Below the pieces are notes generated by a model. The model was not told the DNA's origin. It did not search any database and saw only the letters and a program-made list of their open reading frames with translations. Position numbers and translations under genes: made by a program. A stretch of DNA of 26,009 bases from Vitrella brassicaformis CCMP3155 (taxonomy: Eukaryota > Protista > Chromerida): assembly GCA_001179505.1 (NCBI GenBank), contig CDMY01000737.1, positions 1 to 26,009 of the forward strand. Reading direction: 5' to 3'. Shown in pieces: positions 3,393 through 22,706 of the stretch (the stretch's first letter is position 1; the number at the start of each line of letters is the position of its first letter).

Positions 3393-3825
3393 AATGATCG
3401 ATAGAGACACTTTCCATACACACACTCCAAGCACACACTGCAAGTGGACGCGTGACATTTATCATGTACACACGCTCCAAGTCCAATAAACGTGCATGCG
3501 CAGGTGTGCGCACACAGACATTCATTGTACACACACACCAAGTCCAAACGTGCATGTGCAGGTGTGCGCACAGACACGTTCCTTATATACGCACCCTCCA
3601 AGTCGACGCGTGCATATGCAGGCGTGGCACAGAGACATTTATCATATACACACACTCCAAGTCGACGCATGTATGCACAGGTGTGCGCACAGAGACGTCT
3701 TTCATACACACACTCTGAGTGGGCGTGTGCATGCGCAGGTGTGCGCACAGACACATTCCTCATACACAGGTGTGCGCACAGAAACATTGTCATACACATA
3801 CACTCCAAGTCCAAACGTGTGAGTG
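3393..3825 (+). repeat. Minisatellite array, ~59-bp degenerate unit (caggtgtgcgcacagaNacatt..atacacacactccaagtc.aNcgtgcatgNg), about 7 units, some truncated
   Basis: caggtgtgcgcac-type starts recur at about 3500, 3559, 3618, 3678 and 3735, then as shorter units. A partial unit lies at ~3220-3262. Confidence 0.9.
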
Positions 3826-4078
3826 GCTGTGCCGGGCCTCGGCGCCTATTGATGGGTCTGTCATCCTAAGAGCCGACTGCGGCTCATGCACAAGTGCCTC
3901 GGCGCCTCGCTGAGCAGCATCGCCTTCGACAGGCTGTTGTCCGCCTGTGCGTATGTGGACCGTCAGGTGTGCACCAAAAGGGCCTTGTGTGTGTGAACTC
4001 CTATCGTATCAACGAACGTTGACCATCGTCAGTCAGATCCTGCCGATTACTCAACCATCAACCACTCAACACTGCCAT

Positions 4079-4189
4079 CTTCTCAGCAAGAAGCTGCTCC
4101 GCTCGTTCGGCATTCCCAAACACGCGGGACTCATGAAGGCCTCCATCAATGTCGTCCATGAAAGCGCCTGCAAAATCGTCTGGGAACTC
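4079..4189 (-). mobile_element. Distal fragment of the older (host) CRE-like element: RT catalytic region
   Basis: The minus strand translates EFPDDFAGAFMDDIDGGLHESRVFGNAERAEQLLAEK, homologous to EFPDDFVGAFMDDIDGGLDETRATRYVDRAEQLLAEK of the 4391-6394 ORF. Confidence 0.8.
4178..4189 (+). other. Target-site duplication, left copy (GTCTGGGAACTC)
   Basis: Identical 12-mer at 4178-4189 and 6283-6294 flanking the 4190-6282 insertion. Confidence 0.85.
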
Positions 4190-4208
4190 TTTGTATTTAA
4201 GGTAGATA

Positions 4209-4235
4209 CATGAACGGGCGACGAAGTTCGTCTAA
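4209..4235 (-). promoter_or_regulatory. Conserved 3'-terminal motif of the CRE-like family (hairpin GACGA-ACT-TCGTC)
   Basis: catgaacgggcgacgaagttcgtctaa is 26/27 identical to 7269-7295, while the rest of the two 3' UTRs shows no evident similarity. Confidence 0.7.
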
Positions 4236-4390
4236 GCATCAGTTCGTATCAAGCAATCAAAGGGGAACAAAACATGCAAAGCCAATGAACAACGCTCATT
4301 GACTGCAAACAAATACATACATCTCACGCTTAGCGTGAGACATGCATCACGATACACACATTCACAAAATCCAGATCCAGCCAGCTAACC

Positions 4391-6282
4391 TCACCCCAGC
4401 CCCGAAGCGGGGCTGGTGTGTGGCCTATATGGCCCGCGGCTGACGAAGTCCTCGGGAAACGCGCCGGGTCTCCGTGGCCCTCTGGCGGCCGCAGCGCGTT
4501 GTGCACGACTCGCCACTTGAAACGCGTTGTGCTTCATCAGCTCGACGGACAGAAGCTGGCTCCAGTGGTTGATGATGCTCTCTCGGAAGGCTGCGTCCTC
4601 CTCCGTGGGAATGGAGGTAGGGCGGGGCTTCCGCTTGGCGAGCATCTTGAGAAAATCCATGGTCTTCTCTGCCCACCTGCCGAATGTCTCCGCAGCGAGA
4701 GGCACAAAGCGGAAGCCGGCTGCTTGGGCGGTTGGTCCATACTTGTCGATCTTGTCTTTCACCGCAAGCTGCGCCGTCTTGCCACCTGGAAGTTGTGCGC
4801 TACGCCGGTTGACTGTCCGGTGGAAGGGGATAGGGGAGTCGTCAGGACGGCAGGGGTGAGCGATGGTGACATCGAGCAAGTAATCACTGCCGTCGATCAC
4901 GCAATAGATGTCCATGCGCTGGTTATTGGGGTTGTCGTCGGGTGGGGTGATGCCGAGGCTGTGCAGAGGCACCTCCACATTACAAGGAACATCCGCCTCA
5001 GCCAGGATGCGAACAAACAAGTTGCGCATATTGTTGTGTCTCGTGACCCGCTCACGGCCGGTGTGACACACGTAGAAGTGATCGCCAAACTTGTCAACCT
5101 CCCCGCCGCAGATGCATCGCTGCAAGACGGTTGCGTGCGGGAGGGCAATGCCGAGACACCCGGCGACGGCATGGCGATACTGGAAGTTGTTCAGTGTCTT
5201 GCTGTCGCTGGAAGGGATTGCTGACAGCCAACCAGACGAGAGAGGCCCTTGGCAGCTCAAGAGACGGGCGCGGGCTCTGCTGTCCGGCGGAAGAGAGTTG
5301 AAGAGCTCGTTGAACCGAAACTTGTGCAGCTGATCGGTCAGGCGCTGCTGCAGCCGGACCTGCGGTCTCGAGACAAGGTCCTGGAGGGAGGGGAGGGAGA
5401 AGGAGGGACCGACCACCTCAGAGACGGCAGCGAGGGCAGGGACTGCAGCTTGGAGCCAGGGCAGGTCCAATAGGGCAGCGGGCCCACCTTGAGGCATCCA
5501 TGGGGCTCCACGGAACCGGCTAAAGACATCAGATGCCGTCACGCCGATCAAGCCCAAAAAAGCCGCACGGGCAATCGTGGTTGCAGAGACAAGGCCGAAT
5601 CCTCCCAGCCGGATGGGCAGCTGCACTTGCGCGGAAACCGAGTCAGGGAAGTCGCCGGGAAAGCGGAACATGCGCCTGAATGCCGTGATAATGGCGGCGT
5701 CATGTCGCTCGGCGGCTGGCAGGGAGACATCGGATTTCGGGGGGAGGAGGCGCAGCCAATAGTTTAGCCGGGGGGATGCACAATAGCGGAGGAGAAGGCC
5801 AGAGCCCTGCAAGCCCATCTGAGCAAAGGTCACGATTGCCTCGAGCAGCGGCTGGTGGCCGGTGGTGATCTTCTCGAGGCTGCGCTGGATGAAAGGGTTG
5901 GCGCCAAGCGGGCAGCCGAGGACAGTGATGCCTTCAGTGGAGCACTTCACGCCGGAAGCGGCGATGTCCGCCGGGATGTCGGAGTCTTGTTGCCAGCGGG
6001 GGCTCCATGCAGCACTCTTGTCTCTCCACAGCTTCAGCTTCTTCTCGGCCAGAAGCTGCTCAGCCCTGTCCACATACCGCGTCGCACGTGTCTCGTCCAA
6101 TCCACCATCGATGTCGTCCATGAACGCACCAACGAAGTCGTCGGGGAACTCCTCTTGCAGCTTGACGAGGGCGGGGTAGAGGCCCAGGCAGAAGAGGAAA
6201 GGGCCCGCCGCGTCGCCTTGCTGGGTGCCCTCCTGACTGAGGATGGTCTCCGTGCGTCCGTCCTCCATGCGATACCACAGTT
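4391..6282 (-). CDS. 5'-truncated RT plus restriction-like endonuclease ORF, ~630 codons without stop
   Basis: Motifs: EGTQQGDAAGP (RT), FMDD (YxDD-type catalytic), VLGCPLG, LPIRLGGFGL (thumb), CICGGEVDKFGDHFYVC (CCHC), RHNNMRN and E...RMDI...LLDVT (RLE PD..D-type). The ORF-finder start at 6394 is a read-through from the host element. Confidence 0.88.
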
Positions 6283-6294
6283 GTCTGGGAACTC
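6283..6294 (+). other. Target-site duplication, right copy (GTCTGGGAACTC)
   Basis: Identical to 4178-4189. Confidence 0.85.
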
Positions 6295-7250
6295 CTCCTG
6301 CAGCTTGAGGAGAGCGGGTGGAGGCCAAGACAGAAAAGGAAGGGCCCAGCAGCGTCGCCCTGCTGATCCTCACCTGGCTCAGGATAGTCTTCACGTGACC
6401 ATCCTCTATGCGATACCACAGTTCGGCCGCGTTGCCGTAGAACTGCCAAAAGAAGTCGGTTAGGGAGGGCCACTTGCGCCGAGCTCGTCGAGGATCGCCT
6501 GGCGGTCGATGGAGTTGAAGGCGTTCTTACAATTCAGAGTGACCAGCACACGGCGGGCTGAAGGGTCCCTCTGTGTGTCGATGAGGGTTTGGGGGGCCCC
6601 AAAAAAGCTGCTCTCCCCTGATCGAGGTGCTCACAGCGAATTGAAAAAGTCATCTTCGAAAGCCAACTTGTTCTCCATGCAGACCGCCTTTGTCACCCAA
6701 CGACGAAGCACGTCGCCCACGGCGATGGGCCGAAGTCCTCCACTGTCCCTTCACCAAGGCGAAGAGACATGCAGCGGCGATGATCTTGGTGCAGCCTTCC
6801 GGCACGTCTCCCTCCCCCGCGAGCATCCGTTGGACAAGAGAGGGCAGAGGGATGCTCTGGTCATTCGCTTAGCGTCGCCCTCCCCCATACAGCGGTGAAA
6901 TGCTCGTATCGCCGCCCCGTTGGGCCCCCCGCCGATCCTCGTGGAGCCGTCTTAAGGGCGGCAAGCAAGACAGCAGGCGAAATGGTGAGCGGCCCCTGCC
7001 GTTCGTCCGTGGAGTTCTGGGGCTGTGGTCGAGTAGGCAGGGGGCCGTTCGGGTACTGTTCATTCTCGTATTTGTTGCGTTTATATGTGGGTGAGACTCG
7101 CGTGGGTGTAGAGCTACCGAGAGTTTGGGTGAACAGCTGCCCGCCTAAATGTCCAGCCGGCTGGATGACCTTGAAGCTTCACAGGTTGGCGAAATCAAGC
7201 CTCTTGCGATTGTGGTCCCCGCGTCGCAGCCTTTGGGAAGCGGGTAAAAG
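6283..7250 (-). mobile_element. Proximal part of the older, frameshifted host CRE-like element (N-terminal RT domains)
   Basis: Minus-strand fragments in changing frames: LKTAPRGSAGGPTGRRYEH, CTKIIAAACLFALVK, VGDVLRRWVTKAVC, LNCKNAFNSIDRQAILDEL, KWPSLTDFFWQFYGNAAELWYR, QQGDAAGPFLFCLGLH and LQEEFPD. Confidence 0.82.
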
Positions 7251-7268
7251 TATTCCTTAAAAAAAACG

Positions 7269-7295
7269 CATGAAAGGGCGACGAAGTTCGTCTAA
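7269..7295 (-). promoter_or_regulatory. Conserved 3'-terminal motif of the CRE-like family, second copy
   Basis: catgaaagggcgacgaagttcgtctaa, next to an A/T tract at 7257-7266. Confidence 0.7.
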
Positions 7296-9756
7296 TCCCC
7301 ACAGACAAACAACCAGATCAAAGAGATGAGCAAGAAACAAACCAAGACAACCGAAAACGAAAGTCACACAGCAACCGAAAAACAAACAACATCGAATCAC
7401 TCCAAATGCACGACACACAGTCACCCAGACAAACAGTGCAAACACACAAAGCATACAGACACTGCCGTGCCCAGACACATAGCACAATGCGCACGGCATT
7501 CCTCCACAGCAATCCGCCAGTCCACAGCGTTGGCTGGTGTGGGGGCTGTACGGCCTGATGAAGTCTTCTGGGAAAGCGTTGGCCCTCCGGGGTCCTCTGG
7601 CGGCAGCTGCTCGCTGTGCACGGCTGGACATCTGGAAGGCGTTGTGCTTCATCAGCTCCATAGACAAGAGCTGGCTCCAATGATTGATGGCGCTCTCACG
7701 GAAGACTCCATCCTCGACAGCAGGGATCGCCGCCGGGCGGGGCTTGCGCTTGGCGAGCATCTTCAGGAAGTCCAGGGTCTTCTCTCTCCACCTTCCGAAT
7801 GTCTCTGCAGCAAGGGGGACAAAGCGAAAGCCTGCCGCTCGCGCGGCAGGGCCATACTTGTCGATCTTGTCCTTCTCCGCGGGCGCTGCAGCTTTGCCAC
7901 TGCCCGCCGTGCCGATTCACCGTCCGGTGGAAAGGGATATTGGAGGCGTCAGGGCGGCAGGGGTGGGTGATGGTGATGTCGAGCAGGTAATCACTGCCGT
8001 CGATCACACAGTAAATGTCCATGCGCTGACTGTTGGGGTCGCTGTCGGGCGGCGTAATGCCGAGGCTGTGCAGGGGCACTTCAACGTTGGCGGGGATGTC
8101 CGCCTCCGCCAGGATCCGGACAAACAGGTTGCGCATGTTGTTGTGTCTCAGAATCCGCTCGCGACTAGTGTGGCAGACGAAGTAGTGATCGCCAAAGTCG
8201 TCAACCTCCCCGCCGCAGGTGCTTCGCTGCGTGACGGTTGCGTGCGGGAGGGCAATGCCGAGACACTCGGCGACGGCGCGGCGATACTAAAAGTTGTTCA
8301 GCGTCTTGTGCTCGCTGGAGGGGATGGCAGACAGCCAGCCAGATGAGAGAGGGCCTTTGCAGCTCAGCAGGCGGCTGCGGGCTCTGCTGTCCGGTGGAAG
8401 AGAGTTGAAGAGCTCATTGAAGCGGAACTTGTGCAGCTGATCAGTCAGGCGTTGCTGCAGCCGTACCTGCGGTCGAGAGACCAGGTCTTGAAGGGAGGGG
8501 AGGGAAAATGTGGGGCCAACCAACGCTGACAAGGCGTTGAGAGCAGGGGCTGCCGCTTGGATCTAGGGTAGGTCAAAGGCTAGGCCGTAGGCCCGCTTTG
8601 AGGCATCCACGGGGCAGCTCGGAAGCGGTTGAGGACGTCGGCTGCCGTCATTCCGACCAAACCCACAAAGGCTGCACGCGCAATCGTCACTGCCGAGATA
8701 ATGGCGGCGTCATGTCGCTCGGCGGCTGCCAGGGAGAGATCGGGGTCCGGGGGAAGGAGGCGCAGCCAATAGTTCAATCGGGGTGATGCACAATAGCGGA
8801 GGAGTAGGCCCGGTCCTTGCAGACCCATCTGAGCGAACGTCACGATAGCCTCAAGCAGTGGCTTGTGGCCGTCGAGTATCTTATCGAGGCCGCGCCGGAC
8901 GAAAGGGGTGGTGCCAAGGGGACAGCCGAGGACGGTGATGCCTTCGGCAGAGCACTTGACACCAGACCTGGCGATCTCGACAGGGATGTCGGACGGTTGC
9001 AGCCAGTGAGGGCTCCAGGCAGCGCTCTTATCCCGCCGCAGCTTCAGCTTCTTCTCCGCCCGGAGCTCCTCCGCTCTGTCCACGTATCTCGTCACACGTG
9101 TCTCGAGTAATCCACCGTCGATGTCGTCCATGAAAGCGCCCACAAAGCCGTCCGGGAACTCCTCCTGCAGCTTGACGAGGGCAGGGTGGAGACCGAGAAA
9201 GAAGAGAAGCGGCCCCGCGGCGTCGCCCTGCTGGGTCCCTTCCTGACTGAGAATGGTCTCGGCGCTACCGTCCTCCATACGGTACCACAGCTCAGCCGGG
9301 GTGCCTTAGGACTGCAAGAAGAAGTCGACGAGCGAAGGCCACTTTGTGTCGAGCTCGTCCAGAATCGCCTGGCGATCGAGTTGAAGGCATCCTTATGATC
9401 CACAGTCACCAGCACACGCCGACCAGAAGCAGTTGTGTCTCTGTGAAGGTCTGGCAGGCCCGAAACAGCTTCTCACCGCCTGCCGAGGTGCCCACAGCAA
9501 ACTGCAAAGGAGAGAAGTCGTCTTCGAAGGCAAGCTTGTTGTCCATGCACACCGCCTTCGTCATCCATCGCCGCAGCACGTCGCCGACAGCAATCGGCCA
9601 GACCCCCCCCGTTGTCCTTGACTAGCGCAAAGAGACAAGCAGCAGAGATGACCTTGGTGCAGCACTCGGGCATGTCTCCGGTGAGCATTCTGCTGACGAG
9701 GGAGGACAGCGGGGACTGGTCCTGCGCTGTCGCATCCCCCTACCGCGTAAAGTGTA

Positions 9757-9828
9757 CCGCTGCTTCCTGATAAGGTGACCTCGAAGCTTCTCCGCTGCTT
9801 CCTGATAAGGTGACCTCGAAGCTTCTCC
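9757..9828 (+). repeat. Perfect 35-bp tandem duplication (ccgctgcttcctgataaggtgacctcgaagcttct x2)
   Basis: Units start at 9757 and 9792. Confidence 0.95.
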
Positions 9829-17037: not shown

Positions 17038-17471
17038 TGGCAGAAAAGAGCAAGGTCAGTGCGTTCGACCATTGAGTTCCTGAATACTGCAGGCTGCGGT
17101 GTTCATACTTACTCACGCGCTCAAGCTATCAAAAAGGACCCCCACATACACTTTATAAAGGGAAAAAGAGTGAGACAGCCACGTACAGAAAATCACCACC
17201 CGGCCAAGAAGGTCAGGTGGGTCAAAGAGGACGCGTTCACTTACACCTGTGTCATGGCAGAAAAGAGCAAGGTCAGTGCGTTCGACCAATGGGTTCCTGA
17301 ATACTGCAGGCTGCGGTGTTCATACTTACTCACGCGCTTAAGCTATCAAAAAGGACCCCCACATACACTTTATAAAGGGAAAGAGAGTGAGACAGCCACG
17401 TACAGAAAATCACCACCCGGCCAAGAAGGTCAGGTGGGTCAAAGAGGATGCGTTCACTTACACCTGTGTCA
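17038..17471 (+). repeat. 217-bp tandem duplication (17038-17254 / 17255-17471), about five substitutions
   Basis: tggcagaaaagagcaaggtcagtgcgttcgacc...ttcacttacacctgtgtca occurs twice. Confidence 0.97.
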
Positions 17472-19513: not shown

Positions 19514-19679
19514 AGTTGGAGTATCAGCAGTAGCTCGGGGTAGCGAGTAGGAATGTGACGAAGCCGGAAGAAGCATTCAGTGACGACGGAGGTCTCATGG
19601 ACACGCAAGCTTGGGTCCACAACCATCGCAAGTCATGTCTCGTAGATCTCGCCCGTATAACTCGGTCTCCGCTCTAACT
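19514..19679 (-). repeat. 3' LTR (166 bp)
   Basis: Identical to 22541-22706, with termini AGTT..AACT. Confidence 0.95.
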
Positions 19680-19688
19680 CCCCCTCTC
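19680..19688 (-). other. Polypurine tract (GAGAGGGGG) immediately upstream of the 3' LTR
   Basis: Plus strand ccccctctc directly abuts the LTR. Confidence 0.8.
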
Positions 19689-19729
19689 GCTCGTCAGCTT
19701 TTGCTTGTCGTTGCTGCCGAGCGCTCATC

Positions 19730-20506
19730 ATGAGGTGTTGGCGGTCAGCGAGATCATCGAAAAAGAAACAGACGAGGTGCTTTTTCGGCTGTTTGTCAGC
19801 TCACAGCAGCTCGTCAAGCCATGCGGATGACGCTTGGAGAGATGGGAGGCATCTTGTGCTCTTACTACCACCTCCGCATCACCACGCGGCTTGGCACGGC
19901 ACTCACATGCACATCATGAACATGTAAGTGTGCCTTTTGTTGTTCTGACTGGCTGTCTGCCTTATCTGTCTGCCTTTCCTGCCTGTCTGTCCTTTTCTAG
20001 GTCCAGACTCGGCTGCAGCAGAAGATACACACACACGTAAGCATGTGTCAATGTGAATTGTGTTTGTTTCTTTTGTTGGCCTCAGGGCTTGTGACGAAGC
20101 GCCACGCAAACATCCTGAAGACCATGGTGCTGATGTGTCTGCAGCCTGAGCTGACCATTCTTGGGTCGCTCTGCTGTCACAGACATCAGCTACTTACCTG
20201 ACGGTCGATAGCGCCTTTATTTCTATTGCTTACCTTTTCTCGGTGCCTTTTGTGTTTGCCTTTTTCGCTCTTTTTCTTGTCTATACGTATGCGGTCACTG
20301 ATGGTGGGTTTGCTTGCCTGTGTTGGCTTGTCTGTCTCCCCCTCTTGACCGTATAGGTGAGCGAGGCATTAGAAGCACATGACGTGGCAAACATGCATGC
20401 CAGCTTGCTGAGTCAGATAGAACAGCCCTACATGAGAACTGCTCTGTGTCAGTTTCTCGAATCACAAGAGAGACTGCAGGCCATGCGGATATTCACGGCC
20501 ACGTGA
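19730..20506 (+). other. Antisense, intron-containing passenger region inside the LTR element
   Basis: Intron-like 19924-20000 (gtaagt...ccttttctag) and 20037-20085 (gtaagc...ggcctcag), plus an acceptor at 20356 followed by 49 open codons (VSEALEAHDVANMHASLLSQIEQPYMRTALCQFLESQERLQAMRIFTAT*). Confidence 0.45.
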
Positions 20507-21524
20507 GGGTGTACAGTCCTCACGAGTCGTGATGTCCGTGCACACGTGGCGGCTTTCAATCTTCCCATCTTCTAGATAGGTGGCTCTCGCCTCACACAGT
20601 ACTTCTGTGAGTGTCTGTGGCGATTCTGAGGGCTATCTCAGTCGTCCCTCGCTTTTGCCATTGCATCGCTCTGTGCCTTGTGTGTCTATAAACACACAGT
20701 GGCATCGGCATGCAATGGGTAAGTCAGACACATTTGTTTTGTTAGACATCTGTGATGTCTTTCTGGTGTGCTGCTCGACCTAGCTATCTGTCTTTGATGC
20801 AGCGAGCAGGCACACACATGTGTCTAGACGAGCTGAGACCGCATCAGGCCAGCTGCGCTATTTGTGCGCTGTGCTGTTATTGCTTTGCCTAATGCCCCCT
20901 CTGAGCTCAATGCCCAAGGAGTGAGCCAGCAATTGAGAGTCAGGCTAGGTTTTCGATGAACCCACTTAGGACGCAGAGCATCATCAATGCATTTTATGTA
21001 TGCATGCGACGCTCCACCGTGCGCTGGTCCGTGACTCAATGCTGTACATGTTTGATTTTGCGTGAGGGACATCTGGACTTTGAAATAGAGGTGACGAATC
21101 ACTTGGTGCAGCCATTGCACATGCTCTTTGACTGCATCTGAGCAATCACATCACTCTCTAAGTCCTTTCCCTCTCACACGCACTGTCAATGTGTTCCTTG
21201 ATCAAAAATATGACTGCACGCAGACCAATTCCTCATGGAATCGATCAACAGCGGATCACTTCTCTCTCTGTCAGTTCTTTCTCAGCCCTCATCAATCAAT
21301 GCACACTTGTCATCGATCGATCAACCAGCCGGCAGACCAATCGACCAACAGACGGCAAGATAGCACTGAGTGAGTGACGAGAAGACGAGAGAAAGAAATA
21401 CTTCGTACATATACAGACGTGCATGACGTCCATGTATACGTACACACAGCGTCACTTGTACCAGCCCCCTCTGTCTTCGTGAGCTCTTGGGTGGCCAGCT
21501 AGTGCGCTGTAGTCTTGTAGAGCC

Positions 21525-22409
21525 TCATTCGTCTGGCTCAGATCCATCGTCACTGTCTCGCATCTCTTGCAGCATACGGCCGAGCACTCGACATTCATCT
21601 GTCGTGTGATTGAACAGCGGACGTTCTCGTCGTGTCGGGCAGAGACGGCAGAATAGTTGCCGGCGCTCTTGGGTGGCACCAGCAACGGGCAATGATATCA
21701 CAGTCGATGCTCCCTGTCCTGTATTGCGTCCAGACAGGGTGTGCGAGTCAGATGGACCATGCGTACCGTCACCGAGCTCCGCAGGAATGCGGGCGGCCAT
21801 ACGGCGCATCTTTTCGTAAGTGAAGTCCACCTGCCCGATGAACACACTCCACAGAAAAGCACACATTGGGTTCGCTCTGTGAGCACCCAGACGCACGATC
21901 ATCTTCTGTACGACGTCGTCTTTTGTGCGCCTTTCTGTACCATACGCCTTGTTGACGGCAAGTGAGAGACGGTCAAGGTCTCCAAGATTATCCATGAAGC
22001 CCTTGCTCTCATCGTAATCCCACCTGTCGTATTCGACGTTTATCTGTGAACGCCTCTGCTCGATGCTCGGCTCATATCTGCGACGCAGAGCCAACAGAGA
22101 CACACACCCATCGTGTGTTGTGGTTGCCTCCTGGACCGTTCCTTGACAGTCCTTGCCCTCTGTGGCCCTGTCCAGTGCTCTCCACAACATCCATCTCTCC
22201 ATCCTCATGTTGCGGCGTTGGACATCTGTGAGCGACTCGTCAGCGAACTTCACCGACAGCTCGTCATCAGTTGACGGATGAAAGTACTTGGCCATGCCAT
22301 CGATGCCATAGAACATGCCAGCGAACGACTGACGCCAGCTGTGGTAGTCGCTCTCTTTGCCGCTGAAGCGAGGAGGGTTGGTGGCGATGCCATCAGCCAT
22401 CTGTACCAC
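21525..22409 (-). CDS. gag: Copia-type Gag (UBN2/Retrotran_gag-like) with an atypical C-terminal zinc knuckle, 294 aa
   Basis: PPRFSGKESDYHSWR N-terminus, LLALRRRYEP central motif, CRLC-X10-H-X4-C, and position directly downstream of the PBS. Confidence 0.85.
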   Translation of the reverse strand: MVQMADGIATNPPRFSGKESDYHSWRQSFAGMFYGIDGMAKYFHPSTDDELSVKFADESLTDVQRRNMRMERWMLWRALDRATEGKDCQGTVQEATTTHDGCVSLLALRRRYEPSIEQRRSQINVEYDRWDYDESKGFMDNLGDLDRLSLAVNKAYGTERRTKDDVVQKMIVRLGAHRANPMCAFLWSVFIGQVDFTYEKMRRMAARIPAELGDGTHGPSDSHTLSGRNTGQGASTVISLPVAGATQERRQLFCRLCPTRRERPLFNHTTDECRVLGRMLQEMRDSDDGSEPDE

Positions 22410-22530
22410 AACTCACTGTGTGGCACTTGTTGGATGACGTCACGTTGCTCGGTCATCATCACCGGGAGATGGTGTCTCGTCAGATGGTGAGGGAAGGCAC
22501 GCCAAATGGCTCATCACACCCGAGGTGGGC

Positions 22531-22540
22531 GTTCATAACC
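22531..22540 (-). other. Primer-binding site GGTTATGAAC
   Basis: Directly follows the 5' LTR. GGTTATGA is complementary to UCAUAACC of a tRNA-Met anticodon arm, the priming mode known from Drosophila copia and yeast Ty5. Confidence 0.75.
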
Positions 22541-22706
22541 AGTTGGAGTATCAGCAGTAGCTCGGGGTAGCGAGTAGGAATGTGACGAAGCCGGAAGAAG
22601 CATTCAGTGACGACGGAGGTCTCATGGACACGCAAGCTTGGGTCCACAACCATCGCAAGTCATGTCTCGTAGATCTCGCCCGTATAACTCGGTCTCCGCT
22701 CTAACT
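22541..22706 (-). repeat. 5' LTR (166 bp)
   Basis: Identical to 19514-19679. Confidence 0.95.

Follow-up and report, generated by a model that had tools for sequence, protein, structure and literature searches.

Scaffold C737 of Vitrella brassicaformis CCMP3155, referred to below as the window (the whole stretch of 26 kb that was analysed, to which all coordinates refer), carries three copies of one family of retrotransposons without long terminal repeats (non-LTR), here called A, B and C and all located on the minus strand. A (4190-6282) is a 5'-truncated copy of 2,093 nt that is lodged within the reverse transcriptase (RT) gene of B. The same 12-mer, GTCTGGGAACTC, can be read directly from the sequence on both sides of A, at 4178-4189 (downstream copy on the strand of the element) and at 6283-6294 (upstream copy), and forms an exact 12-nt target-site duplication (TSD). 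The host B thus consists of two parts, running from 7055 to 6283 and resuming from 4189 to 4078. Once A and one of the two repeats are taken out, B can be aligned colinearly with A and C, no gap being needed at the junction, and reads ...LQEEFPDDFAGAFMDDIDGG..., the translation of the junction being LKLQEEFPDDFAGAFMDDIDGGLHESRV. A shares about 91% identity over all of its 2,093 nt with other genomic copies (on C532, C630, C839 and C381), whereas the two pieces of B (6283-7055 and 4078-4189) share only about 72-76% identity with the family, and the step from 91% to 72% is located exactly at both A/B junctions. As both flanks show this same low identity, they are parts of one older element. A is a clean insertion into the older element B, flanked by a 12-bp TSD; the nesting and the duplication proposed in an earlier note on this DNA, which was made from the letters alone, are therefore borne out by this comparison.

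The nesting also explains an apparent duplication of about 140 bp that the earlier note had traced to it: its two copies, of 141 nt, are the 5' end of A and the homologous part of B that immediately precedes the target, which share 80% identity. The 5' end of A therefore lies 141 nt upstream of the point that is homologous to its own target. This proximity is judged to be a coincidence, with a chance of about 8% for a window of +/-150 nt in about 3.7 kb, and the junction displays end-joining rather than a join guided by homology. Truncation at nearly the same point is seen in a copy from another subfamily (L012, C899:7711-9603), which shares 79% identity with A: its 5' end and that of A differ by about 2 nt at most, and its upstream flank is unrelated; this may reflect chance (again about 8%) or a truncation hotspot.

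A encodes the RT from motif B onward, a linker, a CCHC knuckle and the endonuclease, followed by a 3' untranslated region. Its open frame of 629 codons (4394-6280, minus strand, stop at 4391-4393) is supported by its translation, a match to the Pfam domain RVT_1, its substitution pattern and an AlphaFold model. It had been noticed as an open reading frame (ORF) of 667 aa (4391-6394), the first 37 codons of which are out-of-frame B sequence, the 629 open codons being contributed by A. The RT motif C (FMDD) is found at 6113-6124 (minus strand), with D55 and D56 being invariant in an alignment of the family with its relatives (A1). According to the same alignment, A starts after RT motif A, so that the N-terminal region and a portion of the RT are missing, i.e. 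about 520 residues as estimated from the copy on C630, and A therefore cannot be autonomous. The description of the invader as intact consequently holds for its open frame and not for the element as a whole. The ratio of nonsynonymous to synonymous differences (pN/pS) between A and other copies is 0.13-0.19, the differences being mostly synonymous; these data point to a fairly recent insertion that would derive from a lineage under selection.

RVT_1 is the only Pfam domain that was detected, with an E value of 1.1e-14 for a long copy and of 4e-06 for the truncated invader. Downstream of the RT, the nine relatives of alignment A1 share an invariant series comprising CCHC, RH(D/N), D-x12/13-DV, K..KY and E (C389, C391, H401, C405, H415, D457, D470, K510 and E531). 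Residues 389-531, encoded by 4688-5116 (minus strand), include the CCHC knuckle and the core of a PD-(D/E)XK restriction-like endonuclease (RLE). A phmmer search of the Protein Data Bank (PDB) with the invader protein gave no match, and R2 proteins were reached only by the profile of the relatives, in a match that begins in the RT and extends across the endonuclease (E 2.6e-33); this profile also matches the RT of LINE-1 ORF2p, and the RT of the family is of the non-LTR type. The invariant residues of the family align with the CCHC, RHN, PD..DVTV and KY region of R2. When the AlphaFold model of the invader (pLDDT, the predicted local distance difference test score, of 78) was compared with known folds, R2 proteins took the first seven places, ahead of PD-(D/E)XK cap-snatching nucleases that match its C-terminal part. 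Taken together, the conserved residues and the predicted fold establish RT, CCHC and RLE as the layout of the family, and the RLE attributed to the element in the earlier note is supported. Homologue names, cluster members and look-alikes in the ESM Atlas gave no clade information.

No N-terminal zinc finger or Myb domain was seen in the longest copy, which contains an assembly gap, nor in P0003 and P0004, which are the closest relatives of full length; copies on C381, C817 and C703 reach further upstream than the one on C532. The loss of an N-terminal DNA-binding module might accompany a loss of site specificity. A C2H2-like motif is carried by a more distant relative in alignment A1, P0014. 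Besides the family considered here, members of another RLE-type family (the P0009 cluster, about 39% identical) are annotated in Vitrella on C642 and C757, and at least two RLE-type families therefore coexist in the genome.

The 3' terminus of A (4190-4234, minus strand), as delimited by comparison of ends, comprises the 19-mer TAGACGAACTTCGTCGCCC (4216-4234), then ...CTACCTTAA and a 7-nt A-rich tail. The genome searched comprises 72,700,666 bases in 1,064 pieces; it contains the 19-mer 87 times, and a reversed control does not contain it at all. About 20 nt ending with ...CTACTTAA come next, to which a short A-rich tail is often added, and about 80 of the occurrences are real 3' ends of the family. 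The length of the copies varies between about 40 nt and more than 3.6 kb, the 3' end being the same in all of them, and no terminal repeats were found around them. Duplications at eight other copies measure 14, 12, 12, 10, 10, about 15 (imperfect), 7 and 7 nt. The hallmarks of target-primed reverse transcription (TPRT) are all found here: a constant 3' end, truncation at variable 5' positions, flanking duplications (of 7-15 nt in this family) and the absence of LTRs. Folding of the last 111 nt of the RNA yielded only a small GACGA/UCGUC hairpin (z = -0.9) and no larger structure.

Several observations concern the ends of other copies. In one subfamily, CC follows ...CTACTTAA in six independent copies (L008, L013, L019, L072, L079 and L089), and the upstream flank of one of these, L072, ends with TACTTAA, which hints at microhomology priming with the 3' end of the RNA. 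On C365 (L098, 97454-97972), a minisatellite is made of units of about 49 nt, each corresponding to the 3' terminus of the element plus a short A-rich tail.

After removal of duplicated flanks and false positives, 69 independent 3' flanks were retained besides that of A. The target 12-mer of A, GAGTTCCCAGAC, finds its best match in these flanks with 4-7 mismatches, as in shuffled flanks. They do not show any positional consensus (the information content does not exceed 0.2 bit at any position beyond the first). The eight other duplications are mutually unlike, and none is related to the target of A. No RNA gene was found between 3500 and 10500 by comparison with the Rfam families. These data suggest that the family has no sequence-specific target. 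The earlier note had raised the possibility that the element targets its own family at or near the YxDD/EFPD codons of the RT, and had proposed that the 3' flanks of all copies be collected and searched for an enrichment of EFPD-like targets. The enrichment is absent, since the flanks match the target no better than shuffled ones, and the proposal itself is opposed by the unrelated duplications of the other copies and by their unrelated flanks, an outcome that the note had named in advance as refuting it.

The host B is a decayed element. Its 5' part (6283-7055, minus strand), about 72% identical to the family, corresponds to a 5'-truncated RT region with frameshifts and stops, which tblastn searches with P0003 and P0004 follow up to 7025-7055. 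Its 3' part (4078-4189, minus strand; 112 nt, repeat family D5) carries FMDD and adjoins unique DNA, so that B is also 3'-truncated here; the sequence just beyond this break (3780-4077) is unique in the genome, and no further element that would account for the truncation was found in it. B begins around residue 150-170 of relatives that are 970-1000 residues long and was therefore probably dead on arrival. As B was already truncated, no active competitor was knocked out by A, contrary to the inactivation of competitors that had been envisaged for this insertion.

Upstream of B, genome matches delimit two other repeats. A terminal fragment of a repeat of at least 1.7 kb, repeat X (7056-7248, minus strand), separates the 5' end of B from the 3' end of copy C (7257-9760, minus strand, the 5' limit being approximate), the third member of the family, which is 5'-truncated, decayed and about 80% identical to A. 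Repeat X, represented here by a fragment of 190 nt, is also present on C50, C492, C725, C917, C1050 and C901. C, X and B form a head-to-tail chain in the same orientation, the junctions of which are 0-10 nt apart; this chain could result from serial insertion or from end-to-end template jumping. A 5' untranslated region shared by B and C was also considered and was not used, the similarity upstream of the two copies being weak and limited to about 35 nt. According to the coordinates, B and C already made up about 14% of the 26-kb scaffold before the arrival of A. The window also contains satellite-like tandem repeats of about 59 nt (2639-2790 and 3493-3767), which are likewise found beside a family copy on C50 (L050, 1634-2660), a gag-only Copia element (19514-22706) and a near-perfect tandem duplication of 217 nt (17038-17471, 98% identity).

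Family homology is rare in the flanks of the copies. It is limited to A within B, to C, which ends 195 nt before B, to a pair of copies on C855 and to a junction on C703. Among the 12 copies with an assessable 5' flank, A is the only one that has family sequence in this flank, and A within B is the only true self-nested insertion among about 70 events. On C855 (L006, 1-4170), two copies are arranged tail to tail around 2630-2740, with 30 nt between their 3' ends. On C703 (6-5590, L007/L043), a full-length copy runs directly, at its 3' end, into a family fragment in the same orientation, which is 5'-truncated and begins around nt 1628 of A. This arrangement was examined as a second self-nested insertion and was rejected in favour of a head-to-tail junction, as no family sequence is found in its upstream flank and as the region occurs twice, on either side of an assembly gap; the near-identical repetition of the unit across the N gap suggests a scaffolding loop. 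As for the distribution of the copies, a distance of 10 kb or less separates the 3' ends in 13 pairs, where 0.85 would be expected, an excess of about 15-fold. Given such strong clustering, one self-hit in about 70 events is unremarkable.

Combined with the data on the targets, these results argue for a chance hit of A on a dead element, B, in a transposon-rich patch, by a family that would transpose by TPRT without target specificity and accumulate in patches. We give this explanation a probability of about 0.8. With the enzymology taken from R2, the following scenario can be proposed. The endonuclease would nick the target, and the RT would then copy the RNA from its conserved 3' end. The synthesis of the cDNA would stop early, yielding a 5'-truncated copy, and a second, staggered nick 7-15 bp away would give rise to the duplication. 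Copies would build up in small transposon-rich patches, either by a preference of insertion or through selection removing the others from a gene-dense genome. In the present case, A would have struck B by chance when B, C and the fragment of repeat X were already side by side.

Some data weigh against this explanation. The matches of the family sum to about 70 kb, i.e. 0.1% of the genome, which is a lower bound. Under strictly uniform insertion, 70 events would include one or more self-hits with a probability of 0.07 at this share and of 0.19 at a share of 0.3%. The probability rises to 0.46 if the share is set at its upper limit of 0.87%, the value for all long interspersed nuclear elements together (LINEs; 632,421 bp; PMC4501334 supplement). 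One self-hit is thus mildly unlikely (P about 0.07-0.19) if insertion is strictly uniform. In addition, there are two head-to-tail junctions (C-X-B and C703) besides the tail-to-tail pair of C855, and these leave room for some attraction to existing copies or to their surroundings. Lastly, the census is keyed on a single 3' motif in scaffolds assembled from short reads, the repeats of which contain many gaps.

An attraction of this kind could be an active regional homing, in which the element would be drawn to a chromatin state or to DNA beside retroelements, or in which chains of copies would be generated by template jumping. End-to-end template jumping has been described for the R2 RT in vitro. 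The clustering of the 3' ends within 10 kb would fit homing, and the close-set C-X-B chain, the C703 junction and the minisatellite of 3' ends on C365 would fit homing or jumping alike. However, selection against insertions in a gene-dense genome would give the same clustering, segmental or tandem duplication also clusters copies (several flanks are duplicated), most clusters contain assembly gaps, and the chains could be serial insertions. We therefore consider homing unlikely; if it does occur, the self-nesting of A in B would be a by-product of a "safe-haven" strategy replacing the fixed-site specificity of the R2 and CRE types.

Still more doubtful is a targeting of the family by itself, in which the endonuclease or the RNA would prefer family sequences (EFPD/YxDD or elsewhere) and thereby disable competitors. 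It could draw on the clean insertion within the RT gene of a sister element, on the abutting of family members in the window and on C703 and C855, and on the expectation of only 0.07-0.2 self-hits under uniform insertion. Nevertheless, it is largely refuted by the other 69 flanks, which are all unlike the target. A is the only copy bordered by the family on its two sides, the junction on C703 corresponds to another internal position and is devoid of an upstream host half, regional clustering accounts for the adjacencies, and B was already truncated. Self-targeting, had it held, would have shown elements competing in a new way. Finally, an assembly artefact, or a chimera due to recombination or template switching, is hardly credible as the origin of the A/B junctions: the assembly is indeed based on short reads, with 931,689 Ns and scaffolds built from 4,177 contigs (PMC4501334), and repeats on C703 and C381 are visibly mis-scaffolded, but there are no Ns between 4000 and 7300, neither junction has a long shared word that could seed a mis-join, and a chimera would not show, right after the 3' tail of A, the same 12 nt and then B resuming exactly where it had left off.

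The insertion of A into B is a real but ordinary nested insertion. It does not differ materially from those known from other repeat-rich islands, where a younger copy lies within an older dead one, the surrounding patch comprising here copy C, repeat X, the 59-nt satellite and the gag-only Copia element. Its setting is a free-living relative of the apicomplexan parasites with a transposon content of only about 2%, transposable elements amounting to only about 1.5 Mb (PMC4501334). No published description of the family was found in the searchable papers.

Among known elements, those of the CRE clade (CRE1/2, SLACS and CZAR) share with the Vitrella family the architecture of RLE-type non-LTR elements. 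CRE-clade elements insert in spliced-leader RNA genes; in contrast, the flanks of the Vitrella copies are unrelated to one another and there is no RNA gene at the site, so that the spliced-leader specificity by which the clade is defined is not observed, and the label CRE-like used in the earlier note finds no support in the insertion sites. Target specificity is the rule for most CRE-clade elements, and HERO is the one RLE clade for which many non-target-specific elements have been reported (PMC4640811). The Vitrella family resembles HERO by its non-specific insertion, a likeness in behaviour only and in a trait that is typical of HERO without defining it.

The closest likeness in layout is to R2 (R2Bm and R2Tg; 8GH6, 9DOU and 9NL3); no other protein of the RLE type is found among the matching solved structures. 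R2 also combines an RT, an alpha-helical linker, a CCHC motif and a C-terminal PD-(D/E)XK domain in one protein and also gives rise to 5'-truncated copies. The two nevertheless differ, as sequence identity is only about 15%, the Vitrella family generates duplications of 7-15 bp, and neither 28S rDNA nor any other fixed insertion site is found in its 69 flanks (nor any Rfam family between 3500 and 10500). Vitrella harbours a long-lived R2-like LINE family of the RLE type that evolves under purifying selection (pN/pS about 0.15) and appears to insert non-specifically. Since most RLE clades are site-specific, this family offers a natural contrast for work on target choice by R2-type elements.

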